In this document: positions 26,725 to 64,000 of the stretch, one piece after another
Numbering within the stretch: the first letter of the stretch is position 1
Layout: each line of letters starts with the position of its first letter
DNA from: Schmidtea nova
Taxonomy: Eukaryota
Length of the DNA: 64,000 bases
Assembly: GCA_044892505.1 (NCBI GenBank)
Contig: CM097882.1
Location: 184,698,001 to 184,762,000 of the forward strand
Direction of reading: 5' to 3'
Position numbers and translations under genes: made by a program
Notes under the pieces: model-generated
What the model saw: only the letters and a program-made list of their open reading frames with translations
What the model was told of the DNA's origin: nothing
Databases searched by the model: none

Positions 26725-26757
<33 letters not shown>

Positions 26758-30336: not shown

Positions 30337-31973
30337 AATTTATTTATCAAATCTTATCTTTTAATTTTATTTAATTTTATTTTTTGTTTTGGTTAATTTA
30401 AATTTTTAATAACAATTATTTTTTGTGTTAAATTTATTACCAAATATTTAAAATCGATTAGTTTTTTATTAAAATAAAAATAATATATATATATATATAT
30501 ATATATCAAATTCCAAATTAATTATTGTTGCCGGTGAAATATTAAAGAAAATTAATTTGAATTTTAATTTTAAACATATAATCAATTATTAAAACAAGAT
30601 CAATTTAGAATAATTATGATAATAAAATTAATTATTTTTATTTCATTTTAACTACGTAGATATTAGTATACCTTTTAAAAAACTGATAATCAACTAAAGA
30701 TTAATTTAATTATTCAAAGTAATAAATTTAATTTTATGACACGACATTTAGAATCAGATAGTTTTAAATATCATATCTAGTTAATGCGAAGAGTTAATTG
30801 ATACGTGGAACAATTTCCTTAGAGTGAAGATTTATTTGTTTAATATATAGAGTCAGTTGGTATCCGATTAGTTGATTTAACTAGTAGATTGTGGATAGAA
30901 TCAATTGATATTTAATAATTAACTAGTCTGTTGTTGATTTATGAATAGAGTTAGTTGGTTAATGTATAGAACTAGTTGGTTAATGAGAATAGTTAGTTGG
31001 GAAGTAAGGAATTGGTTGATAATTATAGTGTTTAGTTAGTTAGTTGGTTAATGTAGTTGGTTGGTTGGTACAAGAATAATGATTAGAACTAGTTGGTTGA
31101 TGAATAGAACTAGTTGGTTAGTAAGAGATTAGTTGTTGGTTAGTATGTATAGCTAGTTAGTTGGTTAGTGTAGTTGGTTGGTTGGTACAAGAATAATGTA
31201 TAGAACTAGTTGGTTGATGTATATAACTAGTTGGTTAGTAAGGAATTGATTGCTGGTTAGTGTGTATAGGTAGTTAGTTGGTTGGTTGGTAGACTGGTAG
31301 GTATAAGATTAATAGATAGAACTAGTTAGTTGATGTATATAACTAGTTGGTTAGTAAGGAAGTGGTTGCTGGTTAGTATGTATAGTTAGTTAGTTACTTG
31401 GTTAATGTGAAGAGTTAGTTGGTTGATGTATAGAACTAGTTGGTTAGTAAGGAATTGATTGCTGGTTAGTATGTATAGTTAGTTAGTTGGTTGGTGATTT
31501 GTGAATAAAGTTAGTTGGTTAATGTATAGAACTAGTTGGTTAGTAAGGTATTGGTTGCTGGTTAGTATGTATAGTTAGTTAGTTACTTGGTTAATGTGAA
31601 GAGTTAGTTGGTTGATGCATAGAACTAGTTGGTTAGTAAGGAATTGTTTGCTGGTTAGTATGTATAGTTAGTTAGTTGGTTAGTATTGATAAAGTTAGTA
31701 AGTAAAGAATTGTACTATTTGTTAACTAAGGGGATTGGATTATTTGATATATAGGCAATAGGAAGTGATTGTCACATGGAACAATTTCTTAGTTGGTTAA
31801 TATATAGAGTCAGTTGGTAACTTGTAAGTTACTAGTCGATTGATGATTTGTGGATAGAGTCAGTTGGCATTTGATCAGTTACTAGTCAGTGGTTTATTTG
31901 TGTGTAATGAGATTATTAGTTAGTTGATCGGTTTATTGTTGGTACTTAGATTGATTGATAGACGTTACTTATT

Positions 31974-32006
<33 letters not shown>

Positions 32007-35000
32007 ATTATTATTATTATAATTATAATTATTATAATTATTATTTACTTGTTCCCATATTTTTAATTATTACGTTTATTTTTTAAAAATTTATGTTATT
32101 AATCGATATTTTTTAACTTAGTATACAAAATTGTAACAACTCTTGTTTAATAACTATTTTTATTCTAAATAAATTCAATAATTACATATGTTTTATTTAC
32201 TACATTTATTTGTTGTTATTTGATCATTTCCCTAAAAAACATCATATTGAAAAACAATTAGATTTGTATTTATTAGTTAAAAATTTTACTTGTGAAAAAT
32301 ATTTACTTTCGAAAAAATGTTTACTTTGTATTTATTAATTAAAAAATTTACATTGATTTTATTGATAAAAAATTCTACATTGACTTTACTGTTAAAAGAT
32401 TTTACTTTAAAAAATTTCAAAAATAATTAATTATTCTCACATTTTTCAAATATTACCTTAAAAAGTTCCTTTAAAACCAATTCATTTTAAAATTATGACA
32501 TTAAAACTCACGTCTTTCTTAATTACTTTTTTATTCTTAATTTACTTATAATTCTATTTATCATTAAATTTATAATTATTTTTAAAATTCAATCTTTAAT
32601 TTATTTACTTTGCCATTTTTCATAAATCCAGTACAAATTATTTTTAAATTCTAAGTTTAATTTACTTATTATTTTCATGCTTTTATTTAATGTACCATTT
32701 TACTTGATAAATTCAATACAAAATAATGAGTGAATTATTTACTGAGTTTTGAAATTCGTATAGAATTTATTTACTTTTTTATTTAATGTACCATTTTACT
32801 TGATAAATTCAATACAAAATAATGAGTGAATTATTTACTGAGTTTTGAAATTTGTATAGAATTTATTTACTTTTTTATTTAATTATCATAAATTTATTTA
32901 GATTTAATTATTTAGTTTAAAAATTTTTATTTTAAATATTTCCACGTTTTTATGTACTTTACCCTTTTTTACTGAGACTGTCATTTCCCGTATAAAATTT
33001 TGATTTTTTCATGATTTTAATTTTTTGACCTTTATTGTTCGCTTTTCAATTCTCAGTAGATTGGTATAAAAATTATTGAATTCTGAGCATTTTTGATTTT
33101 TTGGAAATTCCCCGAGTTGACCTTTTACGTGTAAAAATTGAGTCGGAAAAGTCAAAATTTTCATGTTTTTACTTTTTGAACCTTTTTTGTTCGCCATTCG
33201 ATTCTCAGTAGATTGGTATAAAATTTATTTGATTCTGAGCATTTTTGATTTTTTGGAAATTCCCCGAGTTGACCTTTTACGTGTAAAAATTGGATCGGAA
33301 AAGATCAATTTTTCATGTTTTTTAATTTTTTGACCATTATTGTTTGTCTTTCAATTCTCAGTAGATTGATATAGAAATTATTGAATTCTGACCACTTTTT
33401 AATTTTCCCCGACCAAAATATTATTTTCAAAAATACCAGACTAAAAATCCTATACAAAAATCAAGATCAAAAATCATATTCAAAATTACCAGAGTCCCTT
33501 TTTGCCCGAGAAAATATCTGGGAGTTGAAAATCATATACAAAATACTTTAATGATAATTTACTTGTTTAAAAAATTTACACGTGTCTTTTATTTAGCATT
33601 AAAATATATATTTCAGTTCAAAATTACCAGAGTCTATTTTTACCCTAGAAAATATCTGGGAGTAGAAAATCCTAATCAAAATACTTTAATGATAATTTAC
33701 TTGTTTAAATAATTTACACGTGTTTTTTATTTACCATTAAAATTTCAGTTCAAAATTATCAGAGTTTATTTTTGCCCTAGAAAATATCTGGGAGTAGAAA
33801 ATCCTATTCAAAATACTTTTACGATAATTTACTTGTTTAAAAAAATTAAACGTCTTTTATTTAGCAATAAAATTACAGTTCAAAATTACAAGAGTCCCTT
33901 TTTGCCTGAGAAAAATATGGGAGTTGAAAATCCTAATCAAAATAATAGGACTAAAAATCCTATACAAAAAATACCAGACCAAAATATTGTATTCAAAAAT
34001 CCAGATCAAAAATCCTATACAAAAATTCCTGTACAAAAAGCCCAGAGGCCCTTTTTGCCCTAGAAAATCTCGGAGTAAAAAATCCTATACAAAAATAACC
34101 AGATCAAAATATTGTATTCAAAAAATTAAAATAAATTAATAATTAATATAAAATTAAAATAAATTAATAAATTAATTAATAAATTAATTAATAAATTAAT
34201 TAATAAATAAATATAAAAATTAATTAAAATTAATAAAATTAAAATTAATAAAATTAATAAAATTTAAATTAATTAATAAAATTTAAATTAAATTAAAATT
34301 AATAAAAATAAATTTTAATTAATTAATAAATTTTAAATTAAATTAAAATTAATAAAAATAAATAAAAATAAAATAAAGACTTCATTTAAACAAAATAATA
34401 AAATTAAATTGACTTCATTTAAACAAAAAATATAAATTTAAAAATTCACTTCATTTAAACAAATTAAAAAAATTTTAAAAATTTTATGGGGGGGGGTTAA
34501 AAATTTTTTTTTGGGGGGTCTGTTCCTGTTCTTGGGCGCTCCCCTACTCTACTATTGTTTATTGTTATATTGTGTTATATTGCATCTCTATTAATACCAT
34601 TTTAACGGCATTTAATTAAATTGATTAATTAAATTTTGTTGTATTTTAAATTTAAAAATATTTTCATTTTAAATATATACTAATTACAAATTAATTTGTT
34701 GTTTGATTCTTGATAAATTTAATTTATGCTTATTTTAATATTTAATTTATTTATTTTAATAAATAATTATATATTTATTCTCCGTAAATTTAATTTTAAT
34801 AATTACTTTATTTATTTCCTAAATATTTATTTTTCGTTTATTAAATGATGTGTGTATCCATTTTAAGCACGCGTTAATTGATCGATTAAAACAATCAAAT
34901 TTAATTTCGATTTAATTTTTCTATTATCTCTGTTTTTTACGATATTTCAATAGGGATTTCTTCTATAATTTTTACTAAATTTTGATCATGCTTTTCTTAT

Positions 35001-35834
35001 TCACTATATAAGTATCTTCTCCTTCAATTGTCGTCCGACCTGCACTCAAATTGTGGGATCTCTCCTGAGATTCCTCTCTTCCATCGTTTCCTCCCTAACT
35101 AGACCGACTTATGAGATTCGGCCTGGAGAGATCATGCACGAATAGCATTTAAAATTTATAATTAGCATTTCATGCATCAATATTTATTGCATCGTTCTTA
35201 TTTAGCTTCGAAAATGATGAAAAAATGTAAGAACCGGAAAATTTATTTTTATAAAGATAAAAACCTCGTGATTCACCGAAAATATATATGTGATCGGATT
35301 ATATGAATTTTTATGAAAATTTTTTTTTGTTTAATGTTGGTTTAGGATTAATTTAGTACGTTTTTTTATAAACATTTAGGATCTTATTGATTGAAATTTA
35401 AGTCAATTTCTTTTTAAGCCACCTTAGATCGATTCTAGTCATTTCAAACTCAATTAAGCGAAAATTTTGCAGCAATTTGACACTTGGTTAACAATGATTA
35501 TAGTGCTTGTTTTTGGATTATGCGTTTATTATCTGTATATAAATGGATTTTGGAGTAAACTGATTATTTTCGATTTTTAGATGATAATAGTCAAATAGAT
35601 GTGCCTAAAAAGCTTTAAGAAAACTTATGTATTAATAATTTTAATAATTTCACTTATTATGCCTATTAATTTAGATACCTAAGAAGTACTTGGGAAAAAG
35701 GAAATAACAAATTTCATAGCGAATAATATCTTTATAAATGTGCCAAAGTTATTTTATTTGATAAATCAAATATAGTTATTATACTTTATGAAACTCTTTA
35801 TGATACTTCTTGAACCCGCCCGCGACATTCGGTT

Positions 35835-35985
35835 ATTTATAGTTTCGATTCATTCGACGCTCACTTTTTGCGAATGTCCACCCATTTGTTACAATACCAA
35901 GGTTATATTGTGTCAGGTAAAAAAATGGTTTTGTTGTTTTGAGCCATAGTAACAATCAAAGCCGTATTGAGTATCAACAAGCAAA
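35835..35985 (+). repeat. Diverged copy of the CCA-terminated structured repeat
   Basis: TCGACGCTCACT..TGCGAAT..CCCATTTGTTACAATACCAA..GAGCCATAGTAAC..GTATTGA..ATCAACAA. Confidence 0.7.
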
Positions 35986-44796: not shown

Positions 44797-45478
44797 TGGT
44801 GGGTTGTTGACCGTCAATATGACCTTGACATTGTAATAGCTCACATCAACAACTAAACATGCAAAACATTAGTTTAACTATATTGTTGCCAGTCATAATA
44901 CAACGTTGGTACTGCAACAAATGGGTGGATATTCACGGTGTCAGGACGAAATTACACGAGACGAAATTACACAAGATGAAATTACACGAGACGAAATTAC
45001 ACAAGATGAAATTACACTGAGACGAAATTACACTGAGACGAAATTACACGGGATGAAATTACACAAGACGAAATTACACTAAAAAATAGTAAGTTCAAAA
45101 AAAAATTAGTAAAAAGTTTAAAAAAAATTAGTAAAAGTTAAGTATTAAATTTAGCATTAAATATATTGAAAATTTTAAATAATAAAATAATAAAATAATT
45201 TTAATAATAAATAATAATTTTAATAATTTNNNNNNNNNNNNNNNNNNNNNNNNNNNNNNNNNNNNNNNNNNNNNNNNNNNNNNNNNNNNNNNNNNNNNNN
45301 NNNNNNNNNNNNNNNNNNNNNNNNNNNNNNNNNNNNNNNNNNNNNNNNNNNNNNNNNNNNNNNNNNNNNNNNNNNNNNNNNNNNNNNNNNNNNNNNNNNN
45401 NNNNNNNNNNNNNNNNNNNNNNNNNNNNNNNNNNNNNNNNNNNNNNNNNNNNNNNTTAATAATAATTAATAATAATTA

Positions 45479-45518
<40 letters not shown>

Positions 45519-46145
45519 TTAATAATAATATTAATAATAATATTAATAATATNNNNNNNNNNNNNNNNNNNNNNNNNNNNNNNNNNNNNNNNNNNNNNNN
45601 NNNNNNNNNNNNNNNNNNNNNNNNNNNNNNNNNNNNNNNNNNNNNNNNNNNNNNNNNNNNNNNNNNNNNNNNNNNNNNNNNNNNNNNNNNNNNNNNNNNN
45701 NNNNNNNNNNNNNNNNNNNNNNNNNNNNNNNNNNNNNNNNNNNNNNNNNNNNNNNNNNNNNNNNNNNNNNNNNNNNNNNNNNNNNNNNNNNNNNNNNNNN
45801 NNNNNNNNNNNNNNNNNNNNNNNNNNNNNNNNNNNATTTTTTAGTGTAATTTCGTCTTGTGTAATTTCATCCCGTGTAATTTCGTCTCAGTGTAATTTCG
45901 TCTCAGTGTAATTTCATCTTGTGTAATTTCGTCTTGTGTAATTTCATCTTGTGTAATTTCGTCTCGTGTAATTTCGTCTTGTGTAATTTCGTCATGTAAT
46001 CGATATTCACAATCAGTGAACATCGAAAATTCGAAATGGTGGGTTGCTGATCGTCAATATGACCTTGACGTTACTATGGCTCCCATCAACAACTCAACAT
46101 ACAAAACATTAGATTAACTATCTTGTTGCCATCACAATGTAACTG
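44797..46145 (-). repeat. Two head-to-tail copies of the CCA-terminated repeat (44797-46036 interrupted; 46037-~46145)
   Basis: Both begin TGGTGGGTTG..CGTCAATATGACCTTGAC on the plus strand. Confidence 0.85.
44937..46001. mobile_element. Foldback/MULE-like non-autonomous element
   Basis: 9-bp TSD GATATTCAC (44928-44936, 46002-46010). Arms are inverted arrays of 15-bp GACGAAATTACACRA; AT-rich gapped centre. Confidence 0.85.
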
Positions 46146-47516
46146 ATTCTTGAAAATTAATTTCAATTATTTTACGCAAAATTGAATTATTATTTTTGCA
46201 TAAAATTTTAAATAAATTCTAAATAATTTATTTTTGATCTAAAATTTCATTTTTTAATCAAAGTTTTTTCCAAATAAAATTAATTTATCATAATTTCTGA
46301 CTAAAACAATTTTCTTTCATGTTATTCGAATTTTTACACTAAAATTTGAAAATTTCCTCCCGAAATGATGTTTATTTTTTCTAGTGTGCTATTCTATTAC
46401 ACAATTGATGTTCTCACGCTATACATGTGTTTTTCACGTTTAAACTCAATACGCTTTTGTTCGTTTCAATTTTTCGACGTGTTTTGATTGACTATTTCTG
46501 TGTGTTCCATTTGAGTCCCTTAAAGTAAATTACTGCCCTAGTTGTTTTTAGATATACTGAAAAATCGTTATCAGAGTTCTGTGATCATGTTGGGCCAAAA
46601 CTGCAAATTGTTTAAATGAAGCGGAAACACAACAAGTAGAGAGCGTGCAAGATTCTAATTTAACCAAAACATCAAGTAAAACCGAAATAGTTAAGTGAAA
46701 ATACACCTAAATATTAAAGTGAACCAAAGTGCATTAACAAGATGATGAAAAATTATTAATTTAGTTTTGCGGAAAATTGTTGAAATTAATTTCGAGAAAA
46801 TTAGAAACTCCTTCTAGAACAATTTGCTTTAATATCTCAATGGAAATATTAGGCAGAAAATTTATATAAATACCGCCATCAAAATGGAGAATTTAAGGAT
46901 ATTTTGCAAAGAATTTACGAGGAATTTTGTTGCTAAATATTTTTTGGGGGTTTTTAGCAGGGAAATTTTAACAAAGAATCTCTTACTACCAACTAGTATA
47001 CCAGCGTAACTCTATCAGAATATTACGAGAAGAAGATAACTTGCAGCCGTTAATCGAATAATTTCGTAAGAAACTTGATTTTGTTTCCTAATTAAAAAGG
47101 CCCGCGAAATCATGCCCTCGCTACCGGGCCTAGGTATTTTAATTTATTTTAACCTTTGTCTATGTGTTGGGCCAAGCCATCCGAAAATAAAACAAAAAAA
47201 TAAATCAAGTAAAATAACAATAAATAATGCAAGTAATCAAGCAAAAATAACTTACCAGTCGGCATATGACCAATACACATCAAAGCCTGAAAGCTAACAA
47301 AAAGAATTAAAGCAAAAATAAATAACAATATAAAAACTTACTCAGACGGAACCAAAATCTGACAGGCGTGGGCCGATACAGACGATAATCTAAAAACATA
47401 ACAAAAGATTAACAAAAATTGAGAAATGAATGAACAATAACTCATCAAAATAATACACAAAAGAAAAATCACTAACCATGAAAAGTAATCAATATATACA
47501 CACATGCTCAATTCTG

Positions 47517-47550: not shown

Positions 47551-48505
47551 CAACAGTGAAATCAGTAGAAGGGTCAATTTTTTAGAGTCACTTTTTACCA
47601 GCGTCAAATTTGGTCAGCTCATTGATAGCCACTTGGAACTCTATTGTAATTATCGAACCTGATCGGAAATAAAAGGTATAGTTACAACTTGTTTTGCATT
47701 TGTTAAACCCTCATATTAAAATCTGTAAGTTTGGTCCCGAAGGTCAAACGATCTGACGGGATTCTCGGCCTCTCGGCACAACACATTTTCATGTGAGGTG
47801 CTGATGCGGCGAGACCATAGGTATTCTGACTAATTCGGAAGAGGAAGGGTGCACATAGCGTGTTCAAGTAGTGAGTGAGAGGAAGTTATAATAAACAGCG
47901 TGAAAAGAAGGGGAGGTACGGGAGGAACCAGAACCCCTGAAACCAAATTCGGTTGACACCAGCCTAGGGGTAGAGTTCCTGTTATCACCAACCATGTAGG
48001 ATCACCTAGGAGTAGGATTCCGTAACGACCACTGTAGTGTATAACCCAAATGGCCCTACAAGGCATCCCCAAAATGATGAAATCAATGATAATTTGACCA
48101 ATGTTTGTTGAATACTGCGGTTCGTGGATGCTGCATCGATTAATACAATATATAAGTAGCTACTGGCCGATATGATATGACGATCCTGATCAGGCCTACA
48201 TAAAATGATTTAACCATGACAATAATCTGAGTGGTAGCAATGCATAAACCAATGTTAAAGCATAACGTAATAAGAATGAGTAGGGTGACATTGATAAAAT
48301 TATTGATAAAAGACGATTGTATTACATTACCTGATCAGTAGTATGAAAAAATGAACAAACATTCAAGCAAATGCATTCGGGTAATAATCTTTTATATTTG
48401 ACTGTATGATGTGATCGACAACGTATGATGAGGTTAGAGTGGTGTATGATGAGGTAATGTGAGGAATGTCCGACACTACCTTTAATTTTCCCCGTCATTC
48501 AGAGA

Positions 48506-49069
48506 ATGCACCATGAGAAAATACGGCAACGGCGTCACGCTACCAAGGAGATAAAATTCGTGAATCCGGAAAACATCCCCACCAATATCAAGCGATCGGC
48601 CGAACGATATCTACGAGCATGGATGCGACGTCACGTCGACCCAGCCACCCGAGAAACCACCTTGTCATTCCAACTACGAGTGCGGTGGGAAGGCGACCCT
48701 GAGTGGTCGAGGTTGCCGAACTTGCCGAACAAAACCCCCATCCGATGGTTCATCCAATTCGAAAATCAACAATGCCAACCACGATGGATATTGAGTAATG
48801 ACTCCATGACGGGCTCTGATCTCTACAGGCTCGGTTACATCTTAATGGATCGACCCCGATGTATATACAGTGGCGAGATGCGACCATACTTCCATGCGTC
48901 GGGAAGCGTCAACATGGAACAACCTTTGGGAAGAGGTGACGGGAGAATATGGGAAGTCTTCGTCTACAATGATCATCTCTGTTGGGATCCGTGTCCCGAG
49001 ATCTATCAACCAGACTGGAAAGGACGAACGGACAAGCAATACAATCAAGAATTAATAGAGTTCTCCTGA
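48506..49069 (+). CDS. ORF-A, unknown Trp-rich 187-aa protein
   Basis: Open frame with elevated GC; a stop-interrupted homolog lies at 11790-12300 (minus). Confidence 0.7.
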   Translation: MHHEKIRQRRHATKEIKFVNPENIPTNIKRSAERYLRAWMRRHVDPATRETTLSFQLRVRWEGDPEWSRLPNLPNKTPIRWFIQFENQQCQPRWILSNDSMTGSDLYRLGYILMDRPRCIYSGEMRPYFHASGSVNMEQPLGRGDGRIWEVFVYNDHLCWDPCPEIYQPDWKGRTDKQYNQELIEFS

Positions 49070-49319: not shown

Positions 49320-49880
49320 ATGAATACGGGTGAAGTCCGTGATTATAAGAAGGAAGCCAAGGAGTCCAAGTTACGAGTTAGAGTGCTCGAAAGTAGGCTA
49401 CGGCAGTTGAGTGAAGAACATCAGATCGTGAAAACCACGTGGTTCCATCCGGAACGCGTGAAATCTATCCAACAGGCCAGATACCGAGCCGAGCGAATGG
49501 CTGAAGAACAAACCTGAGAAACGACCGCCGTAAAGCTAGAGTTAAACAATTATACGAGGGCATCGACAAAGGACTTCATAACACAGCAATTGCGGCCTCT
49601 CATCCGAGCCAGCACTTTCGACCGCTGGATAGAGTCCACCAGAGTATCCACAAGTATGCACACGGATATGGAATCAAGTTCTATGACTAATACCCCGATA
49701 AATACGTCGAAACCTGAGGGCTCCAAACGAACGAAACGACGGAATCGGTTGGGAGCGAAACAGAGACGATAACGAAGGGAGTATGCCGAGCGAATCGGAA
49801 TTGAGGTGGACCTCCTGAGTGGTCTTACTGAGAAGCAGTTGCTCGCCGTAATCAATCCGTCGACGTTATTAAATGGAAAA
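49320..49880 (+). pseudogene. ORF-B, coiled-coil protein with Arg-rich tail (two in-frame stops)
   Basis: Single frame: ...VKTTWFHP...EQT*ETTAVKLEL...ASTFDRW...KQRR*RREYAERIGIEVDLLSGLTEKQL. Confidence 0.7.
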
Positions 49881-50477
49881 TAAATGTATTTTGATGGAGA
49901 TAATTGACTTGAATGAATGAGGAATGTACGTGTTATTTAAATAAATGTGATGATTGAACAAAACTAATTCATTTTATGCTATCGGGCATCCTAAAATCGA
50001 AAATACCCTAGATGAGACAAAAGAGATTGAGTAAGAAGGGACCAGAACAAAACCACTTAAACCTTCTAACGGTAGTGGTGGACCCGTGAATAAACAAGGG
50101 AATAGTGGCCGCAAGGTTACTCACCTGCCTTGTCATTTCACAACGTTGACACAGCACCAACATGATGAGTAGTTAGGCATACATCATGGGTGTCAGCGGG
50201 GAGATGTTTTTATGTTGGCGAAATCACCCTAACGTATAAAATCAAATATGATCTCAGTTGAACATCTAACCAACACACTAGCATATGTATTATAATATGA
50301 TATGTTATGTAGTCTCTTATGAAAATTATAATTTTTCTATTCAAATTCTTATTAAATCTCGTCACATTTTCTCAGTTACTAATATCATTTTATCATTATT
50401 TATCATATATACATTTATATTTTTTAATGTATTTCATTAAAACCACTTCCATACATTCTGACATCTGGTGAATTTTG

Positions 50478-50665: not shown

Positions 50666-50741
50666 GGTGGCTTTTTTTTGGAATTTAGGTTCGATTAATT
50701 AATTGTGGAATTATGGTTGAATTTCGTTAACGCTTTCTAGA

Positions 50742-51643
50742 TTGGGTTTTGTTTTATTAATCGAGTTTTTCTGGAATTTACGAATATTCTGGGCTAAAAA
50801 AATGGAGATACCTAAATCTTTACTAATGAAAAGTGCACCCGAAGAAGAAGAAGAAAGATATGAAATTGTAATTAAAACAGTCGCTTCATTGAATAAAAAT
50901 GGTATTAAAGTATGTTTTCATGCAACAATATGCTCCATCATTGAAAGATTTGTTTCTTCATATCCTACAAGTGAAGTAGTTGGTGCTATATTTAGATCTA
51001 TCAATGCATATTTGGGTGGCGTAATCATCAGTAAAAATACATCTAGATTATTGGAAAAAGTTCTTTTAGCCTGTAAATCCAAAGACATTTCTAAAAATGA
51101 GATTGTGAGATTTCAGAGTCAAAAATTCTGTGAATATATGTGGATACATTATCCGGATCATTTAGAAAACAATATCTGTTCGCATATTGTGAGAATGTTT
51201 TTCCAGTTTGCATTCGATGTGTATGTAGGATTGGAAGGAAAGGTGTATTCTTCGAAATCAGTTGTCATTTCTACACCGATGCAGGATAACAAATATTTAG
51301 AAAAATTAAACGACCTAATTAAGCGTTTTCTCAGGAGTCCACAAATTGAAAAGTTAATCACAAATGAATTCAGGAGTTCTACATTGCAAGCTATAATGGT
51401 AATCTGTAAAAGTCGTTGCCTAGACAAATTGAATGAAGTAGTTAAACAATCAATGTCAGTTCGTGGCGAAATGGACAAAACGAAATCTAATGATAAAATC
51501 CAAGCATTGTCTGGCAGTAACGATGTCATAGTTCGATTTGACGATTCTCCCGAAATCCTCTCGAAAGTCTATTTGAATGTTGTTTATTTAGTTATGGAAA
51601 CGAATAAAAATTATTATTTGGCCGTTCAATTGATGATTTTACA
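50742..51643 (+). pseudogene. NOP9: NOP9-like (PUF repeat) N-terminal fragment, uninterrupted ORF
   Basis: EEEEERYEIV, SKNTSRLLEKVL, ICSHIVRMF, FRSSTLQAIM resemble NOP9 repeats by recall. The ORF runs into a non-coding repeat after ~51644. Confidence 0.6.
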
Positions 51644-51797
51644 GACATCCGTCCGGCCTTGTGCTGTACGGACGAAAGTAGCCTTGGTGGATTTCTGTTC
51701 GGTTCGTAACTGGCCAGCCAATTTTTCCGCCTCAGGCGAAGCCTTAACATCCATGATCACTTCATCTCATATTGAGGAACAGTGGCTTGGCCAAGGG
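51644..51797 (-). ncRNA. ~170-nt structured repeat, copy 1 (remainder at 50448-50465)
   Basis: CCTTGGCCAAGCCACTGTTCC..GATGAAGTGATCATGGA..AGGCTACTT shared with 56018-56193 and 62455-62639. RNA function is inferred. Confidence 0.5.
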
Positions 51798-51960
51798 CAA
51801 GGTTTTTCATATTAATAATAATAATCAATTTATATTAATGTATTTTTATCTGAATTATATTATACAACATACAGTAAATTAAAATTTTATATTTTGATGA
51901 AAACCAAAGTTAATTCGTCCAATATTATCTTTATTTCCATAAAACTTATTAGTATAAAAC

Positions 51961-52200
51961 TGGTGGGTTGTCGATCGTCAATACGACCTTGACGTTACTA
52001 TGGCTCTCATCAACAACTCAACACATAAAACATTGAAATTACCATCTTGTTACCCGTCACTATGTAACGTTGGTACTGTAACAAGTGGGTGGGTATTCGC
52101 AATCAGTGAGCGTCGTCAATACAAAACTATGATTGACCGAATATCTCCTGGGTCCAAGGGCTACCGATAGAAGGTTTCTCGCCCCTTTTTGTCCCTCCTA
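51961..52200 (-). ncRNA. CCA-terminated structured repeat (~250 nt)
   Basis: Hairpins conserved with G-U and compensatory changes across copies; ends CAACCCACCA on the minus strand. RNA function is inferred. Confidence 0.55.
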
Positions 52201-52423
52201 TGTATTATTTACTTCGGAAAACTTCATGTACTTCATTTACTATTGAACCTCAGTTGCTTTTACTCAATTTATTCTATACATTGCTTTATTGCATTCAATC
52301 ATTCAACCCAATAAAAAAAAGTAAAAAAACAAGAGAACACTTTAATGTTACCAAAAAAAACAACACAAACTACAAAGAAAAAAAACAAATAAATACACGA
52401 TAGGATATTCGTTGTCCATTTAA

Positions 52424-52987
52424 TCACAAAGCAGTAATGTCTATTATGTCTACAGATTCCTTGCGGACTCGTCCCAGCAGTCTCGCTTCCTGTCGTCGTC
52501 TTCGGCGAGCCCTCACCCCTTTATTGGGCTTCTGTCTGGCTGTTTTGGCGGGAACAGGAGGTGTCGATATCTGTTCCTCGACCCTCATTGGGAACAACTC
52601 TTGAGACAGGCGGGGTGGTTTTGGTAGGACGGCGGCAATGATGCCACTGTCCAATCTCAGCCTTTCATTTTGGGTTTCCAAGTCCCTGATTGTGACTCAG
52701 CACGCCCGCAATCTCATTGCGTCGTCCGCAGCCTGCTGCAACAGCATCTGGTTTTGTTTGCGGAGTTTGTCGACGGTCTCTTTGTCCGACCACGTCGACT
52801 CCATCTCCCGGCACCGCGCTCGGAACTTCTCCATCCGAGAAGTCATGATCTGTAATGCATCCATATTCGAGGTTTTCGCCCTCTCCATCTCGGCGAAACA
52901 CTGGTCTACCCGGCGATTATGGCGGGCATTTTCCACAATCAGTTTGTGTATCTCTTCGAATTTCTGCTCTATATTCATTTCGGACAT
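52424..52987 (-). pseudogene. ORF-B paralog (coiled coil plus Arg-rich tail), one in-frame TGA
   Basis: EMESTWSDK aligns with VKTTWFHP / LKRTWFCP; GVRARRRRQEARLLG aligns with GAKQRR*RREYAERIG. Confidence 0.55.
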
Positions 52988-54799
52988 CTAAAAAATTATA
53001 CAATAATAACCCCTTCCAATCGTCACTTGACATTCAATTCCAAATATTCATTTTAAATCAATAAAACATAATCATTTTGATCGATGAACACTTATCGATT
53101 TTTCATAACCAACACAAAATTATTTCCATTCACACATTCATTATTGCTTACAATGTTTACCCTCAAATATACCATCGCCAACTCAGTTCAGTGATCGAAG
53201 AATCTTTGATCTATCACAAAATTTCGGGGTAATAAATTTTTCTTGAGTTGGACCCAACTATTATTAATTTCTGGGTGGTTTTGATTTTTTATATTTTTGT
53301 GTTGATAAATTTAACTAAAATTTCGCTTATCCCTTATACCTAATGTCTATCTTGCTTATTATAAATCTTTAGCATTTTATTAAAATTTATCATTTTGACT
53401 TTTCAAAAATTCACCGAGGCCCTAGCAACGGTATCAGTATAAAATGCTTAAATATTAAGTAAATTAGATTTAATTATTATCTATTAATTCCACATCCTTT
53501 ATATATTTTCAGATTTTAAATTTAATTTTAATTTAAGAAACTCAAATCGGGTCCGGATACCCTGAAAACAACGCTGTTCCCCCGTAAAAGGAAGGAACTA
53601 TATAAACGGGTTTCTAAATTAGACGATTTTTAATGGGTAATTTATATTATTAAATTTTATTTATTATAATGTTGTTTTATCGATTTTCTTGTTTATTTTT
53701 AGAAGAGAATCCCCTTAGAATTCGTTGGGAAAATTATCATTGGAATTGGTAACTTTTATTTTTGACGATTTAGCTCAAGATTTGATTTTTATTTGTAGCT
53801 TACTCCCCTTGATCGATATTCTGGCGGATAGACGGCTCTCAGTGGCTAACTTTACCAAATGTCACATCGTTTACTCGTTCAAAATTCTCATTGAACGAAT
53901 TACACCCCAAAATTTGGATCAATTTAATTTCGCAAATCAATGCCTCATTATCTCAATAGATGGAGATGCTCTACTATTCCAATGGAATTTCTCCAATGTC
54001 TGGAATTTTTACCTGATCGATGGACTATTATGACACCTATTATATTGGTATATTGTAATTTTATAAAGTGTTCTTTTTGATTTTTTCAAATTTTCAATAA
54101 TAAAAGTTTTAAGCATTTTTAACTTTTTAAATGTTAATGTCGATGTAATTATTATAAATTTTAAATGTGGATGACGATGCGTTATTTAAGAAACTATTTA
54201 GTTGACTCGTAAGATTTAGATGTGTTCTGTCGACTTATAAGCACGTCAACGATCGGTTTACATTTCCGCCTGCTATTTTACAAATTTTTCAATCTCTTTT
54301 GTGTAAGCGACTCATGATTATATCCGTTGTTCAGGGTAAATTTGATTGTGCTCGTGGTATTCCCATCAACTACTAGTTGAAGGCGATCTAGATACCCTTT
54401 CATGTTAATGGGTGTCTCGGTTACTACTTTCAGCTAGTATTCGTACGTGCCGTTGGATGTTGTAACTGTTCCCAATTGACTTCGATCTCCGAAACTTCAT
54501 TTTTTGGGTGTAGTAGATGATATGCAAAATGTGACCTAGATGTGAAGTTTACTATGAGTGATAGGAGTGGTTAATTACCCTGATCCGGTGAGTTAATGGG
54601 CAAGAATGAGGTATGATTTTGAAAGTTTGTATGCATCTATGTCCTTGTCGATTTTGTTACGAGTCTGTTTGGTGTGATTGCCTGTGAGGAACGGTTGAGC
54701 TGAACTAAGTAGTTTGATGAAAATGATATACTGAGTGCTTGGGAGTTTCCTGGATGTATGATGCTAACTAGCATAACTGTGCAGATTTTCTGCATGAAT

Positions 54800-56600
54800 T
54801 GTTTGTGTGTATATAATTGTTGAATACTATTGAATGATGCTATGTATGTGTGTATATTGTATTTTGAATAGATGTTACTTGTGTATTAGTATGGGTGATA
54901 CTATTGATTGGTATGGGTGTAATGAATTGCAAATTTGAATTATATGTGATTTTAAGGGGTATTTTATAAATAATAGTCATATTATATAAAATAAATTCCA
55001 GATTAAAATAATAATATGAATTTTTTCAATTTCTAAATTAATAAAAATAAATTTTATACTTTCTAGATTAATATTTTATATTTCCTAAATTAAAATAATA
55101 ATAATAACTTTATACAAATTTTAACTTTATGAATTCTTAAGATTTCGACAATAATAAACTTTCTGATTTTTACAATATACATGCTTAGGTTCGAGTTTTT
55201 GTAGTTTAAAAATTTTTCTATAAAATTTTGGATTTTATAAAATGATAAAATTTTCAATATAATAATAATATTTTCGATTTGAAATTTTTATGGGTTTCGA
55301 TATAATTTTTAATTTACAAATTCTTAGGAATTTTTTGGTTTACAATTTTTCATTTATAAAATTTTTGCAATATAATAAAAGGTAAATATTTATTTTTTGA
55401 TCAACACGAAATCCACATAATAATAAATTTTTATCCATAAATTTAGAAATCCAAATAAGCATTCAACCTAAAAGTTTTATATACTGAATAAAAATAAAAA
55501 TAAAATAAGTTATCAATTTTTTCACGAATAATTTTTTCGACATCGAGCAAAGTGAACTTCGGTTTCGTTCTAGCATGAATTTCCCAACCAAAGTGCGCGC
55601 GAATTTCTCGGGACACTTAACTTAGGAACTTCAGGCTCCCGAAAACAAGGTTCACTAGAAAATTATTTAGATGAGGAATGAGGTTCAATTCAGATCGATC
55701 AATACTTGTCTTAATAATTCATTTCATTTCGTGATCGTTATATCAGTTTTGAGCATTATTTCAATCGATTTTCCTTTCAGCATTAGCTTCCATTTACTTG
55801 CGTTTTCGGATAAGATGACGGTTGTTGCGAGAGCGAAGGTGACGACGAGTAAAATGTTCTTGCACAATTGTTTTTCATAATGGAAAAGACGTTACTGGAG
55901 AGATTGGTCTTTACGTTCACATGTGGTATTAGTTTTTAAAAGTTAAATATGTCAAAAATTATAAATTCGGATAAACTACATTTATTATAAATCGAATATC
56001 ATTAATATAACAACTTGCCTTTGGCCAAGCCACTGTTCCCCAGTTGGGATGAAGTGATCATGGATGGTTAGGCTATTCACCTGGACTCGGAAATATGGGC
56101 TGATCAATTTACGTATCGAACCAGCGATCCGCTCAGGCTACTTCCACCCGATCGGCACAAGGCCAGACACAGGCTTCAGGGGGTACGGGAGCAAAAAAAA
56201 TTTAATTAGTTTTATTTTGGTGCAATAAATATTAAAATGAACTTCAGTAAATCATGGGAACCTATGACGAGATTAAAATCAAAATAATAAAAAACAAAAT
56301 AACTTTCATTAAATATATAATAATTAAAATTGATTATGATACATATAGGCAATAAAATTTACAAATAATAAAATAATACCAGGTACGGGGTAACTGAAAG
56401 AGCATGCTGTTCAGTGACCCCGCACCGAACAAAAGAATGTTTCTTACCGAATTTTTCTTTTTTCCACAAATTTTTTAATTCAAAACAAAAATTTTTACTA
56501 AATTCTCCAAAAAAATTCTGCTTATTGCCATTTTGATGGCGGTATATATACCATCGATTTTCGTCACCTTCACCAGTGTAATAAAACAAATTATTCTAGA
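54800..56600 (+). repeat. Long diverged repeat; direct copy ~61550-63150, partial inverted copy ~57600-58470
   Basis: Shared blocks ATGGGTGTA..AATTGCAAA, GAGCGAAGGT..GACGAG and the 170-nt element. Confidence 0.7.
56018..56193 (+). ncRNA. ~170-nt structured repeat, copy 2
   Basis: See 51644-51797. Confidence 0.5.
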
Positions 56601-59600
56601 ATTTTCCTTTTCCTTTTTCTAATTTAATTCTAATGATTTTCCGAAATTTATATCCATATTTTTGTGTAATAATTTTTTACAAAACACCAATAATTTATTT
56701 TAATTCAAATTTTTTATTTTTGAATCGAAATTTGTTCGATTTGATTTAATTTACGATATTTCAATTACTATTAGTTCTTTTTATTGTTAATGTGAAATAT
56801 TTTGATAAAATCACAATTTTCGGCTTAAATTTTGTTAATTTTTCTGCATGAAGGTTTTATAACATAATTTCGTTTTTTATGGGTATTTTCAATGGGTTTT
56901 CCACCCATTCTAACTTTTAAACGTTCTTCTTTTGATGGCATTTGATTTTTCTCGAGGTTTCAATGTAAGGGCTTTCAGACTCACAGCTAGCGCGTTCTCT
57001 ACTGGTTGATGTGTTTTGAGTTCACTTCACCTTTTGTTGTTTTTCACCTAATCGTTTGGATTTTTAATGGATGTTTGGGTTAAAACTGAATCTTGCGCGC
57101 TCTCCACCTATGGGGTTATCGCTTTATTAAAACAGTTTGTGGTTTTTGCCCAATAAAACACACAGCTCGTTATTAACCTTCGCTTTCGCAAAACCTTTTA
57201 TCTCCTCAGAACTTATAAGCCAAATGGAGGTTGAAATTATGAAAATCGTTAAAAACAGATGCTCAATGGTCAATATAATTATCTAGATCACGACCGAAGA
57301 TGTGAATAATTATTGATTTATTTAAATCTAAACTCATAGAATTCAAAAATTATAAAATTACAAAGATTTGTTCAAAAACAACAGCTCAATGATCATTAGA
57401 AATGCTTCGAACTTGTGAATAAAAATTGATTCCATCTATTTGAACTTCATTAAACCGAAAATCCTTTGTAAAAATTTATAATTTATATTTAAAGATAATT
57501 TAATATATAAAATTTTTTTTTGAATTATTTAGATTGTGAAATTTGTGAAAAAAAAATTTATAGAGGTTTTAGATTTGGTTATAAAAATAAAAATTTACTT
57601 TTATAGATACCATGTTATGTAAAAATTATAATATAAAAATTATAAATCAAAATTTTTTCTAGAAATTCTTATATCAAACCTTGAATACTTGAAGGAATAC
57701 TTGAAAATTATAAGTCAAAAATTTTATTATTATATTAGAAATTTTATTATTTTATAAAATTCTAAATTTGAAATTTTGTAGAAAAATTTAATATTAATAT
57801 ATATGTATATCCTTAAAAAATAAAAATTAGAATTCAAAAATTTATTATCACATTATAAAAATTAGAAATTTTATTATTATATAACTTTTATAAAATTGTA
57901 AATTTAAAATTTGTAGAAAGTATTATAAAATTATTATATATTATTTTTATAAATTCCCGCACGATATCACAAAAATCATAATACATCCATATTTGCAAAT
58001 CAAAATCAATACATCCATACCATACAATAACACCATCAATATCTAATACCACATAAAAAACTTTATTTAAATATAATACACACACAACATCGGTTCACTC
58101 ATTAACATCTATCAGCATCACACATCCAGAAAATTCACACAAGAAATTCATTCAACAACATCTGTCTGCATCACACATCCAGAAAACTCCACATGCACTC
58201 AATCGTTCACAGCTATCAAGGAATTACTTATTTCACCCAACATACCATCGCATACAATCACAACAATAGGTCATTCATCTCCAATTTTTTGAAAACATAC
58301 AAAGTTGCATTCACTCCACCCCATCTCCTCGGAAAATATCAAAATACTACATCCATTGTAAAAATTTCTTTACACACCACAACATCCCTATTCACAAATT
58401 CATCAATCAGCATCCACATTTAACGCGGCACATGAGAATTTATTTCTCCACGCAACCATACAATTAACTCAACACATCATAAACCTGAGACAGCTCGATT
58501 CCTAGCATCATATTGTCACTCGTGATTTAGTAATATCTGAAGGTAACGTCTAACTCGTAGTCCATGGTCCCTCATAATGTTACGGAACTATTACACTACC
58601 TACCTTACTGATAAAACCTTAAATTTTAAAACACTGATGACTAATTATGTTACCTTTATGAATGCCAAGTTTATACATAAAAAGTAAAAATGAAACAAAT
58701 ATTTTCATTGATAAAATTTTATTATAAAATAACTTTTTATTAACCTGACAGAATGTCAAATTTCATAACATGACTTTAATGTTCACATAAATAAAAGATT
58801 TTTTTAAATTTAAAATGCACCACAGTCCAGTGAAGAGGAGGAGATGGAAACGCTAGTGATGGCATTTCATCGACAAAATTGTTGAGACATGCTTATGAGA
58901 TCATACATACATCTTGTGAATTTGTCTAGCGACGGAGCCTCATCCCAGTGAGGTTTTCTGAATAAAAACATGCATTGATTCCTGAGTGGTATTATGTTAG
59001 ACAGAAGACATCACATGAAGATATCTCTGTGTTTTACTTCCTGTGATGGACAAGAGTCAGTTCACTCTCACCACAATCAACATAATAATGCAGGAGGGCG
59101 GTTCGATTCATTTCTAGACAGATTTATGAATTCCATATTACACATTAGGGGTAGAGAGCTCGTTTGTTTTCAGAAGGAGAATTCGCTGTGGGAGAGACCA
59201 TTCAGCCAAGATGGAAGCAAATGATTATTTCCAGGCCAGACAGGCAAAATTTAAAGTATCTATAATAACAAATTATTTTATATATAGAAAAAATATACAT
59301 ACCTACTGCAGATTAGGACAAAGAAAAAAGAACGGTCATAAATAATGGGCCTTTACTACACCGTGTTTCAATGAATGCGTTCAACTATAATGCACAACAC
59401 AACACACAAAAAACCTATAATGAAAAGTACAAACACATGGACATAATTTAAGTGACAGTCTTTAATTAAGGGATTTTAAAATTAAAAAAATCATGATTTA
59501 TGAAGATATTTCAGAAACTTTTTTGGAATCAATTGTTTTATTTATTGGAGAGGATCAAGAAGAAATGTAAACTTACAATTATATTAAAAGATTTTTAAAA

Positions 59601-60569
59601 AATATTTTTAGAAATGCAGAAAATGAAGCTTTAATGCCTCAAATGGCCGAAACTGTAAAGAAAACATCGAAAAACGTAAAACAAATTTGAATTTTTAATT
59701 TAAAATTTTATAGATAATCTGAACATGACAAAATATTACTAAAAGTAATGAAACGGCGTGAAAATTATGAAGAATTCGACAAGCAAATGGGTTTGAACCT
59801 AAAATTATTAGACATAAAGTCGAGATATAAAAAACTGACATTCTTACAGAAGGGAAAAGAGGCAGATAAAATGTTAGCATAATAATTGAAGAAAATGGAA
59901 TACAATGAATTGATTGTGTGGACCACAATTGTTGGATTATTTTGGAAGAAATGATAAACTTCTTGGATACAATTAGCTGTCATGTATACACAAAAACAAT
60001 ATCCAAATGTTTAAAAGATAAGCTGATAAAATTATAAAGACTTACTTTTTTCTCTATTTCCTAAATATCCTAAAATATCTAGTTAAAATAAATTGGTATT
60101 TAACTTAAAATATTAAATAAATTTAAAATATGTTAAAATACCTTAATTACATAGCTAAAAAATTAAATTAAAAAAAGTAAATAATAAGTAATAATAAATA
60201 CCAACTGCCTGTATTAAGTGTCTTTGTGGCCATTAATTACAGACTGTTGGTGTACAAATGAGGAATTCGAATCTAAAAATAGATGGACATAGAAAATTTC
60301 AATTAATAAATTTCAATATAGAAATTAAGTTAACTTACCGAAAATTAACCAATGAGAAGGCATGGATTTTGTTTATCTTTTATATAGTATCTACCCTTAT
60401 AGGAGGTTCGTAGACGTTCCTGACGGGTAGGGGAGTGATTTTGGTTCGCGTTCCTAAATTAAAGTATAATTTTTAACTCAAATGTATATCAATAAAACCC
60501 GTCGAGCTTGCAACAAAAAATTGTAAATTAATCGATCAAACCTTTTTAAAGAAAATATTTATTTTTCTC

Positions 60570-61453
60570 GTTAACCGCCACTAAGGCCTCGGCGAGAATT
60601 TAATCGTGAAAATTATTAAGATTACATTTATTTTAATGGTTAATAAATTTTAACTAGCAAGATAGACATTAGGTATAGGGGATAAATAGAGTTTAATAAA
60701 ATTTATTAACACAAAAATATAGGAAATTAAAAACATCAGGAAAATAATAGTAGTTTGATCAAAAACAATAAAAATCAATTACCCCGAATATCAGCGTCGA
60801 TAAAAGATTGTTCGATCCCCGAATTGAGATTGTGATACGATGTTTGAGTATGAGCTTGGGAATAAACTAAAAATCCGAATATGCTTGTTTTCTTTTGATA
60901 ATGTAATGTGTAGCAGCTGATGGAAATAATTTATTTTATTACGCTTTAGATTTTGATCAAAGAAATCGAGAATTCAGTGACAGTAAGGTGCGAAAACGTC
61001 CCGGAAAACCCAAAGAACTTTAACACTCCTTGTACGAATGATTTTATTGATTCTATTCTGTTTGTTCTTGTGTTGTGCATCATAAATGGGTCATTACATG
61101 AATTATTAATGTTTTGATGTTAAAGAATGTTTTATTTTGATGTGATAATATACTTATATCGATGAAGATTATTTATTTTGAAATTCCGATTAAAATATTG
61201 TAGATAAATCATTGAGGAAGGGACAAAATGGGCATCAAACTTTCTATCGGTAGCCCTTGGACCCAGGAGATATTTGGTCAATCATAGTTTCGAATTTTCG
61301 ACGCTCACTGATTGCGAATACCCACACATTTGTTGCAATACCAACGTTGCATTGTGACGGGCAACAAGATGGTTAATCTAATGTTTTGTATGTTGAGTTG
61401 TTGATGTGAGCCATAGCAACGTCAAGGTCATATTGACGATCAACAACCCACCA
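60570..61453 (+). repeat. Diverged inverted copy of 51961-53420, ending in the CCA-terminated structure (61213-61453)
   Basis: GCAAGATAGACATTAGGTATA, TTACCCCGAA and CTATCGGTAGCCCTTGGACCCAGGAGATATT shared; ORF-B part largely lost. Confidence 0.8.
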
Positions 61454-62454
61454 ATCAGTTTAACTTAATTCATATAATAGTGATAATGACGTTTATTATA
61501 ATAACGGAAAATGAAGAGATGGATGTGAATGAATGACTTTGGTGTGGGTTTTCTGGATGTGACATGCTGTGAGTGGGATACTAATGAGTGAAATGATATA
61601 ATTTATAGGTATTTACAGATGAATAAATTTGATGTGCGGTATTAGCTATGGATGGTGTTAATGAATGGTATGGGTGTATTAATTTGCAAAAATTGTTTTA
61701 TGAATTATTTATAGTTTTAGGTGGAGTATTTTATTCAATATTATGAATATATAAAATAATTTCATCAATTTTATAAAGTAATAATCGATTTTATTATTTA
61801 TAAATTTTCCTAAATAAATTGAGATAAATTAAATTTGGAATTTTATAAAATTCTTACAACAATAAACTTTTGATTAATAATTTTCTACGTAAATTAGAAT
61901 ACATTTAAATTTAAATTTTTATAAAATTTATATGATAAAACTTTTAGAATTTGAATTTTTATATATTATAATTTGAATCTAAGACTTTTCATATCATATT
62001 ATTTTCAATAATAGGTTTTAGCAAAAAAATAATTTCGATCGTATATGAATTCTCCAAGCAAAGTGTACATAAAATTTCCGAGACACTTCACTCGGAAAAT
62101 ACTCGAAATTATGGTTAAAATTAAACAATTTTTAGGAATAATTTGTATAATCTAATACGATCTAAACACATCTACTACTCTTTGAACTGCTATTTAGAAG
62201 ATTTTCATAAATTCGATTTTTCTCAATGACTTTGTGATTTATTCCCTGATGAGGTGAAAAAGATGTTCATATGAGCGAAGGTTGGTGACGAGATGGATGT
62301 ATGATTCAACGACTTTCAATACAGTTCGACATCAAAATACTATATTGTTACGAAATATTAACTTGCATCATATTGCCGGTAAGGTATGTATCAAAATATA
62401 TAATTCACATAAATACACTAGTATAATTCATTATCGTTAGTATAACAACGTTGT

Positions 62455-62639
62455 CCTTGGCCAAGCCACTGTTCCCCAACATCAACGTATGGGATGAAGT
62501 GATCATGGATTGGTGGGCTTTACCTTTGATAGAAATATAGGCTGGTTCATTGACAGGCTTCAACGAAACAGCGATCTACTCAGGCTACTTCCATCAGCAC
62601 AGCTCATGAGCCGGACTGACTTCAGAATGTATGGGAGTA
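62455..62639 (+). ncRNA. ~170-nt structured repeat, copy 3
   Basis: See 51644-51797. Confidence 0.5.
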
Positions 62640-64000
62640 AAAAATAAGTTATTTAGTTACAATAATCATACGGTCGATAACTTGATAACTTTAGTAAAAT
62701 GAGTTGACGTGACAGAGTTTAAAAAAACGAATTTCATATATCAAAAAAATCGAAATCAAAATAAAAACAATCTAAATTAAAATCACTATAATTATTTTTA
62801 CTATTTCAGATTTAGATAAAGGTTATAAAATGAAATTATCATAATGAAATAATGCACATATAAGTTAAAGATAAAATAAAATACCCGGTATGGTAAATGA
62901 AGCATGATCACCAACCATGCTTTAAAATCATGAAGCTTACATCAAAAACCTTTTCTTTTTTTTGGGACAATTGATGACTTTGGAAAAAAACCTTGTTGTG
63001 TTACGAATTCTGAAAACTGTTGAGAGTTTTCGGTTGGTGTTTGAAAAAGTTTCTTGGTAGTTTGAGATTCTGAGAAGGTAAATAAAATTCTAATTGCGTA
63101 ACAAATTTTTTTTTCGGCCAAGGTTCCGCTAAAATAGAACTTTGCACCGGCCGGTTGTATGAAATTCTGACGATTTCAATTTTTTGGCGTTATTTATAGA
63201 ATGTTTTGTGTGTTGTTTTCATTGATACAGTAAAACAAATTGTTCTAGAAAAAGTTTTCGACTTTTCGAAAATTAATTTTAATAATTTTAAGCAAAATTG
63301 AATTATTATTTTTGCATAAAATTTTAAATAAAACTTTAAATAATTTATTTTTAATCTAACAATTTTCTTTTAATTTTTCTTTTATCTAAAATACAAAGTT
63401 TTTTCTAATTTAGTTTTTTTCTAATTCTTTCATATTTTATAAGTTTTTAAGATGAAAATCGAAATTTTCATTATAAAAATATGTTATTTTTTTAAATTTT
63501 AAATTTTGTGTTATATATGTGTTTTTATCATGTATATTTGATGCGCTTTTGTTCATTTTAATTTTTAAACGTGTTTTATTTAATTATTTCGGTGTTTTGT
63601 GATTACTATGTTTTACTTGGTGTTTTAGCTCTTAGAATTTTAAATTTACTTCTTGCGCGCTCTCTGCGTGCTGTGTTACCACTTCATTCAAATAACTCTC
63701 AGTTTTTGCCAAATACTATGTTGGTACTGTAGATGGATGTACAAGAACCAATGAGCAGGTGAGCTTCGTTACCAAAATTACTTTTCACTGCATTCTCCTT
63801 TCGGGTTCCTGGCTGGCGGTAGAATGTCTCAGGCTAATGATTTCATCTTTCAAGGTCCATTCAATTATCGTTATGTATCTTTTGAACATCATTTGCTACT
63901 AGTTGGGTCCTTCATTCAATCGTCTGCATTATACATCCATTCTTTTTTACATCAACTACAGAAAAACCCGTTTCCATGATGTGTTCCATTAATCGAATAC

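Follow-up and report, generated by a model that had tools for sequence, protein, structure and literature searches.

The question raised by this locus is what a dispersed, non-coding module of about 245 nt, several copies of which finish in CCA, contributes to the DNA in which it is found. In the sequence-only reading of the 64-kb stretch of DNA analysed here (the window), the module had been taken for the 3' replication or priming signal of a multi-ORF unit, with a tRNA-like end. Our analysis reveals that it is the 3' end common to a decayed repeat family, that its fold is conserved in a strand-specific manner and that it is usually CCA-terminal.

The window has a G+C content of 28%, contains six N gaps and carries many repeats. 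Its recognisable coding remnants are of the animal-genome type and include a Tc5/pogo DNA-binding domain and CAP-Gly exons. A remnant of a hAT/KIAA1586-like transposase is located at 1385-2554 on the minus strand; the nearest outside relative shares 58% identity with it, and Hydra, a click beetle, turtles and snakes all have related sequences. Beside this remnant is an ORF of 295 codons without a family (552-1436, minus strand). At 21734-23586 (minus strand), an LTR-type retroelement fragment consists of a gag-like DUF7041 ORF and another that is retropepsin-like; no close relatives of the fragment were found in a protein word search. The region 24223-34518 is a young palindrome, the arms of which are 97-99% complementary and are built of 93-96/117-nt and 130-152-nt tandem repeats, with a spacer of about 2.1 kb (28548-30641) and an N gap at 24350-24607. 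Another tandem array, consisting of about 12 copies of an 18-nt unit, is present at 14195-14410. An ORF at 7585-8100 (minus strand) shares 78% identity, over its first 54 residues, with the C-terminal portion of an unnamed database protein of 296 aa (P0101); the ORF also has a Pfam SAPS match, which falls below the curated cut-off and is probably spurious.

A profile search identifies eight members of the module family in the 64 kb, which belong to three sub-types, namely E (five members), F (two members) and G (at least one member). The profile, of the nhmmer type, was built from the four full copies, and its iteration gave no further members in the window. Locations and main features of the members, of the coding regions upstream of them and of one insertion are listed in Table 1.

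Table 1. Modules of the family, associated coding regions and an insertion in the window.
Feature	Position	Strand	Description
E1, full module	61213-61453	+	GGGAC 61220-61224; T-run 61384-61387; helix P4 61330-61367; terminal hairpin P5 61397-61447; unpaired CCACCA 61448-61453
E2, full module	51961-52212	-	87-88% identity to E1; partner of E1 in an old inverted duplication
E3, 3' part of 5'-truncated copy	44797-44934	-	corresponds to E1 61316-61453
E3, 5' fragment	46004-46036	-	corresponds to E1 61288-61320; abuts the CCA of E4; parted from the remainder of E3 by the foldback insertion
E4, 5'-truncated copy	46037-46143	-	94% identity to E1 over 107 nt; tail-to-head with E3
E5, decayed copy	35809-35985	+	internal deletions; mutated 3' end without CCA
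F1, full module, second sub-type	10613-10858	-	ends CACCA; 11-nt direct repeat on both flanks
F2, full module, second sub-type	50029-50280	+	ends CACTA
G1, third sub-type	63682-63838	-	5' two-thirds of the family kept; 3' part differs
ORF-A, F2 unit	48458-49066	+	203 codons, unbroken; without Pfam or PDB relative
ORF-B region, F2 unit	49473-49880	+	module sense; 2 in-frame stops, no frameshift seen
ORF-A homologue, F1 unit	11799-12194	-	29% identity in 133 aa; two or more in-frame stops
ORF-B homologue, F1 unit	10978-11362	-	41-45% aa identity; at least 1 frameshift
ORF upstream of E2	52427-52987	-	module sense; 187 codons, 1 in-frame stop; ends about 215 nt upstream
Foldback-type insertion splitting E3	44935-46003		146-nt terminal inverted repeats (99%); 9-bp target duplication GTGAATATC; outside the family

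The copies at 10.6-10.85 kb and 50.0-50.3 kb, which the sequence-only reading had listed as distant, are genuine family members according to nhmmer (E-values of 1e-59 for F1 and 1e-64 for F2), and G1 is another. Short motifs are common to the E and F modules and occur in the same order, with different stems between them. In E1 this order is GGGAC (61220), a 14-nt stretch around TCTATCGG, GGACCC, ACCAAC, the T-run followed by ATGTTG, and the A/C-rich end. Sequences related to the 3' half of G1 are also present at 46590-46718 (plus strand) and 57091-57155 (minus strand), with a different tail. These extra G-type pieces suggest, by their sequence, that the window may hold more decayed members than the profile search lists.

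Exact-pattern scans with short degenerate motif patterns revealed no copies outside the window in viral, metagenome or prokaryote genome contigs; one metagenome match (L001) was rejected as a chance match at 58% GC. Inside the window, a weak covariance-model match at 21681-21773 (minus strand) sits in an A/C-rich stretch and was likewise judged to be due to chance. An Rfam search had been suggested together with the sequence-only reading; no family matches the module, and E1, F1 and F2 remain without a match even at E ≤ 10. At the same threshold none of the three matches any Rfam 15 ribozyme family, so that no self-cleaving motif of a known class, such as those of hammerhead retrozymes or HDV-like 5' ribozymes, was detected. 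Literature searches gave no published description of such an element.

Four copies of the module, E1 to E4, end exactly at CAACCCACCA, at 44797, 46037 and 51961 on the minus strand and at 61444-61453 on the plus strand, as had been noticed before. Alignability of the four copies is lost directly after the final A of the CCA. With one mismatch allowed, CAACCCACCA gives 11 matches against 1.8 expected, a number that none of 100 shuffles attains. The end base is identical in E3, E4, F1 and F2, which have unrelated flanks, and the downstream flanks of F1 and F2 are also unrelated to each other. The base following the module end varies (A, G, T, A, A or G). The unpaired 3' tail is 5-6 nt long and A/C-rich, being CCACCA in the E type and CACCA in F1. 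The copy at 35.9 kb (E5) is diverged and does not have the common end, again in agreement with the earlier description. The idea that the ends are fixed at CCA is correct for E1 to E4 and F1; however, the last bases of F2 are CTA, the G type is without such an end, and CCA is therefore not universal in the family. Since the E and F types also have letters before the CCA in common, the CCA end may simply be templated.

The terminal hairpin of E1 has the form that was proposed from the sequence, including a 14-nt bulge, and RNAalifold predicts the same hairpin unaided. Its 9-bp outer stem is formed by a 5' strand at 61397-61405 and a 3' strand at 61439-61447; the bulge (61406-61419) follows, and a 6-bp inner stem (61420-61425 with 61433-61438) carries a loop of 7 nt. 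The four stem substitutions named in the sequence-only reading indeed lead to G-U pairs on the plus (ORF-sense) strand only, and the compensatory GC/AU change between GTTGC/GCAAC and GTTAC/GTAAC is likewise confirmed. Pair cells in E1 to E4 (n = 104) comprise 92 Watson-Crick pairs, 11 G-U pairs and one mismatch, and no A-C combination occurs. All six single changes in the stems of the E type produce G-U on the plus sense and none does so on the opposite strand, a split that would have a probability of about 0.016 were both strands equally likely. In P4 and P5 of the E type (28 pairs), 94.7% of the cells are paired and two pairs are altered on both sides, and with five sequences the shuffle control for these values is no more than suggestive. 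Substitution density shows no significant difference between paired and unpaired columns. Folding energy of the whole module is unexceptional (z of -0.2 to -1.0), with F2 alone at -2.5.

Comparison across sub-types extends this picture. A covariance model made from the E type only finds the 3' domain of F2 at 16 bits, and pairs both P4 helices (outer and inner) as well as the helix that closes P5; a sequence model made from the same alignment has no match in F2 at E ≤ 10. When F2 is aligned with the E type (six sequences), 94.3% of the cells are paired (equalled in 0 of 500 shuffles), eight pairs are altered on both sides (equalled in 2 of 500) and covariation reaches a score of 0.276 against 0.166 (0 of 500), although all these values favour the structure because the alignment was fitted to it. 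Slid controls for the same alignment are 24-69% paired. Separate folds of E1, E2 and F2 agree on the 5' stem and on the shape of P4, and the inner helix of the 5' stem differs on both sides, the E type having GGGC/GCCC where F2 has CCAC/GUGG. In F1, P3 and the closing helix can be accommodated and P4 cannot. Overall, five helices are spread over about 245 nt, and conserved single-stranded motifs sit between the covarying helices. Within this small sample of six sequences, the claimed structure-preserving variation on one strand is borne out.

Only 166 nt of the module remain in E3 and 107 nt in E4, both being without the 5' part. The CCA of E4 directly adjoins E3, the start of which is equivalent to E1 61288, and the two are thus placed tail-to-head. 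The foldback insertion that splits E3 is 1.07 kb long; its inverted repeats are built of sub-repeats of about 16 nt, and two N gaps are located inside it.

The surroundings of E1 and E2 contain inverted colinear patches (70-76% nucleotide identity at most), which belong to an old duplication centred near 56.5 kb and spanning 51648-55321 and 57671-62619. The patches correspond to each other at 57671-57769 with 55321-55223, 58088-58191 with 54844-54741 and 60574-60787 with 53438-53224; they go on through the modules themselves and, past the CCA, at 62398-62619 with 51860-51648. Because both sit in one old inverted duplication, E1 and E2 are not independent insertions, and the number of independent events in the sequence-only reading was therefore too high. 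The module is by far the best-kept part of the duplication. As E1 and E2 are 87-88% identical and their immediate flanks are no longer alignable, the module must have been kept or homogenised. E4 is nearer to E1 (94%) than is E2 (88%), the duplication partner of E1. The flanking repeats of E1 (5 nt) and of E2 (6 nt) are such as chance alone would give, and no LTR or terminal inverted repeat was found to accompany the copies. In the same part of the window, a 364-codon open frame at 50721-51812 (plus strand) has no relative in Pfam or PDB, and its 3' end, at 51648-51860, recurs at 55964-56168 and 62398-62619.

Coding regions upstream of the modules connect the two F loci. Both contain two homologous coding regions in the sense of the module, 120-190 nt upstream of it, and the F2 (plus) and F1 (minus) loci are colinear in the order ORF-A, ORF-B and module (tblastx, summed E-values 1e-25 to 1e-37). 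The matched segments are 48677-49057 with 12188-11799, 49473-49844 with 11362-10978 and 50029-50302 with 10857-10595; their amino acid identity is 31-45%, and sense frames outscore antisense frames by far. This colinearity implies that F1 and F2 are the 3' ends of units of at least 1.7-1.9 kb. Coding parts of the F and E2 loci stand out as G+C-rich islands (43-55%) within an AT-rich background.

The proteins encoded by ORF-A, ORF-B and the ORF upstream of E2 have no Pfam or PDB relative, and no relative of ORF-A was found in viral contigs. The AlphaFold model of ORF-A has a pLDDT of 41.6 and is too poor for a fold search. The protein encoded upstream of E2 is helical in its N-terminal half and rich in arginine in its C-terminal half, with no family match. 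A link between the upstream regions of the E and F types was not established; the best match between them (34% over 32 aa, pairwise E-value 0.086) involves the arginine-rich tails, that of the E2-upstream ORF being weakly similar to that of ORF-B. Pfam searches gave no reverse transcriptase, endonuclease or integrase domain in the 90 ORFs of at least 75 aa of the whole window, nor in 56 segments of at least 38 aa upstream of the modules. The units in the window may perhaps be truncated or non-autonomous. One of the 56 upstream segments (from 12.2-15.5, 34.7-35.8, 46.2-48.5, 53.0-56.0 or 57.0-60.6 kb) matches the Pfam TBP (TATA-binding protein) domain with an E-value of 4.7e-5.

The explanation we favour is that the module is the cis-acting, non-coding 3' module of a family of interspersed units, most likely non-LTR-type retroelements without a poly(A) tail. 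The family displays traits of non-LTR 3' ends, namely a common 3' end, variable 5' truncation and an RNA structure conserved on the sense strand; another such trait, an ORF for reverse transcriptase and endonuclease upstream of the modules, is absent from the window. We consider this explanation about as likely as not, given the lack of a visible reverse transcriptase and the small sample. Copying would proceed through an RNA intermediate and would need a reverse transcriptase, by which the module is presumably recognised. The RNA, in the sense of the upstream ORFs, would fold into several helices with the conserved single-stranded motifs between them, and the last hairpin together with the unpaired A/C-rich tail of 5-6 nt would offer the 3' end of the template to the reverse transcriptase of the element. 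Copying might then begin at or beside the last base, in which case full and 5'-truncated copies would all end at the same nucleotide. Incomplete copying could leave tails such as E3 and E4, and a jump of the enzyme onto the 3' end of another template could yield the junction between E4 and E3. As for the earlier claim of a 3' priming signal of a multi-ORF unit, the module is indeed placed at the 3' end of ORF-bearing units and in their sense (F1, F2 and E2), independent copies of it have one fixed 3' end and pairing is maintained on that strand only; however, the tRNA-like, CCA-initiated mechanism that was part of the claim is not supported, and the window contains no reverse transcriptase of any kind.

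The main rivals of this explanation are a free-standing SINE-like element and a conserved 3' UTR or RNA element of the host. According to the former, which we regard as possible but unlikely, the module would be a free-standing retroposon of the SINE kind, or else a conserved core to which different tails can be joined; its 3' part would be common to it and a partner element, and the ORFs upstream of F1, F2 and E2 would belong to the partner or to neighbours. Nucleotide conservation begins sharply 8-20 nt ahead of GGGAC in the E pair as well as in the F pair, and the 11-nt direct repeat of F1, which has a null probability of 0.002 outside tandem repeats, lies exactly at this boundary and encloses the module alone, not the ORF-bearing unit. 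Upstream of E5 there is no homologous sequence, and the 5' two-thirds of the module are common to the sub-types, the tails of which differ. All this would suit a SINE. However, F1 and F2 carry the same two coding regions at equal distance and in the same sense, which independent insertion does not give, and, given the homology of the upstream ORFs, the repeat of F1 is no proof of a free-standing SINE. The remaining target duplications are at chance level, and no likeness to tRNA, 5S or 7SL RNA is detected by ARAGORN or Rfam. In addition, a run of 4-6 T is conserved inside the module, ahead of the terminal hairpin. Such a run is expected to stop RNA polymerase III and therefore disfavours a Pol III transcript spanning the module.

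A host function would mean that a multi-copy family of host genes carries the module as a conserved part of its 3' UTRs or as a small RNA, that selection for mRNA stability, localisation or processing, and not for copying, keeps it, and that the isolated tails are debris of duplication. We consider this quite unlikely, although several observations are in line with it. E1 and E2 are far more similar than the arms of the duplication around them, which are alignable in patches only; ORF-A and ORF-B are without a transposon domain; and the position of conserved single-stranded motifs between covarying helices would fit as well. On the other hand, three of the four loci have disrupted ORFs, and E3 and E4 are 5'-truncated tails that are joined tail-to-head and have unrelated flanks. 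The closer relation of E4 than of E2 to E1 points to later copying or conversion, and eight members in 64 kb is a high density, in DNA that is otherwise rich in transposons.

A tRNA-like 3' end, with the CCA directing the start of copying, was the mechanism originally suggested, and in a variant of it a minihelix gains its CCA after transcription. We regard this reading as very unlikely, and equally so one in which the RNA of a nuclear multi-copy element of an animal-like genome ends in a CCA-tailed minihelix, with the CCA either serving directly for the start of copying, as in the mitochondrial retroplasmids of fungi, or being added after transcription. Five of the six intact ends do finish in CCA, the doubled CCA of the E type lies beside a helix in which stems of 9 and 6 bp are stacked and a loop of 7 nt closes the end, and the joining of the CCA of E4 straight to another copy is what an end-to-end template jump would yield. 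However, ARAGORN reports 0 genes, and the Rfam families of tRNA, tRNA-like and mascRNA type are unmatched even at E ≤ 10. The tail is 5-6 nt long instead of the 4 nt of NCCA, and the stems of 9 and 6 bp are interrupted by the 14-nt bulge. F2 with its CTA and the G-type members without the end do not agree with such a mechanism either, nor does the absence of a retroplasmid-type enzyme from the window, and the letters before the CCA that E and F have in common allow a templated end.

We find it highly improbable that the structure functions in single-stranded DNA and marks the end of a rolling-circle (Helitron-like) or other ssDNA transposon. G-T pairs would be tolerated there too, a strand-specific hairpin does lie near a fixed 3' end, the copies agree at their 3' and not at their 5' ends, and the upstream ORFs are unrelated to known transposases; but the end is CCA or CTA and not CTRR, the next base varies where a fixed T is required, five helices over about 245 nt are far beyond the need of such ends, and no Rep/helicase domain was found in the window. 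Finally, the suggestion of a primer-binding site beside an LTR (TGGTGGG on the other strand), or of solo LTRs in place of the copies, has a negligible chance of being right: the module can be read as TG...CA on either strand, but homology stops at the CCA so that no LTR follows beyond TGG on the other strand, a second LTR-like copy upstream of the ORFs is absent, and neither the 5'-truncated copies nor a flanking repeat of 10-11 nt (instead of 4-6 nt) fits.

If the module is the 3' end of a non-LTR-type retroelement, it would represent another retroelement that is recognised via a folded 3' RNA instead of a poly(A) tail. This would leave what is already known unchanged, would aid annotation of the repeats of this genome and would provide a clean, small case of a structure kept across diverged sub-families. 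The significance would be greater if the orphan ORFs and the CCA end belonged to an undescribed mechanism of copying, or if the conservation of E1 and E2 above the surrounding duplicated DNA reflected a host function. Were the CCA added after transcription, CCACCA of the E type would record a double addition, and in the case of a CCA-tailed minihelix the orphan ORF-A and ORF-B proteins would be those of a kind of element not yet described.

Several known systems can be compared with the module. Mitochondrial retroplasmids (Mauriceville and Varkud) and plant viruses with tRNA-like structures use a 3'-CCA end in the initiation of replication. A 3'-terminal CCA beside a helix and a copy-to-copy junction at the CCA are reminiscent of these systems. 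However, the module is not tRNA-like by ARAGORN or Rfam, has a tail of 5-6 nt and does not have the CCA family-wide, and its setting is nuclear-type, dispersed and repeat-rich, unlike that of mitochondrial retroplasmids.

CORE-, V- and Deu-SINEs are among the superfamilies in which the core is conserved and the 3' tail can be exchanged, and the 5' and central parts that E, F and G have in common, followed by different 3' tails, resemble this organisation. The module differs from them in that no head derived from a small RNA is detected, a T-run is present internally and three full-length modules have ORFs of the same sense just upstream.

'Stringent' non-LTR retrotransposons and their SINE partners, such as the L2-clade pair UnaL2/UnaSINE1 of eel and the CR1-type elements, have recognition elements in the 3' UTR. 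By description, these are similar to the module in having a conserved 3'-terminal stem-loop and a short unpaired tail without poly(A), in the 3' end that is common to all copies, many of which are 5'-truncated, and in a structure that is kept as the sequence drifts. In contrast to them, the module family has no visible reverse transcriptase or endonuclease gene, its tail does not consist of short tandem repeats, conservation extends over about 245 nt and several helices in place of one hairpin, and the upstream ORFs are without relatives.

Short, internally deleted derivatives of the R2 element are described in PMC3414825. The module has a parallel in the 3' RNA of R2, although it has no Rfam match, no rDNA target and no detected 5' ribozyme. 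The 3' UTR of R2 (Rfam R2_retro_el) is, like the module, a 3' RNA of about 250 nt in which the fold is conserved above the sequence between lineages. It is bound by the protein of the element, and copying starts at the end of the RNA; by analogy, the same role may be proposed for the module described here.
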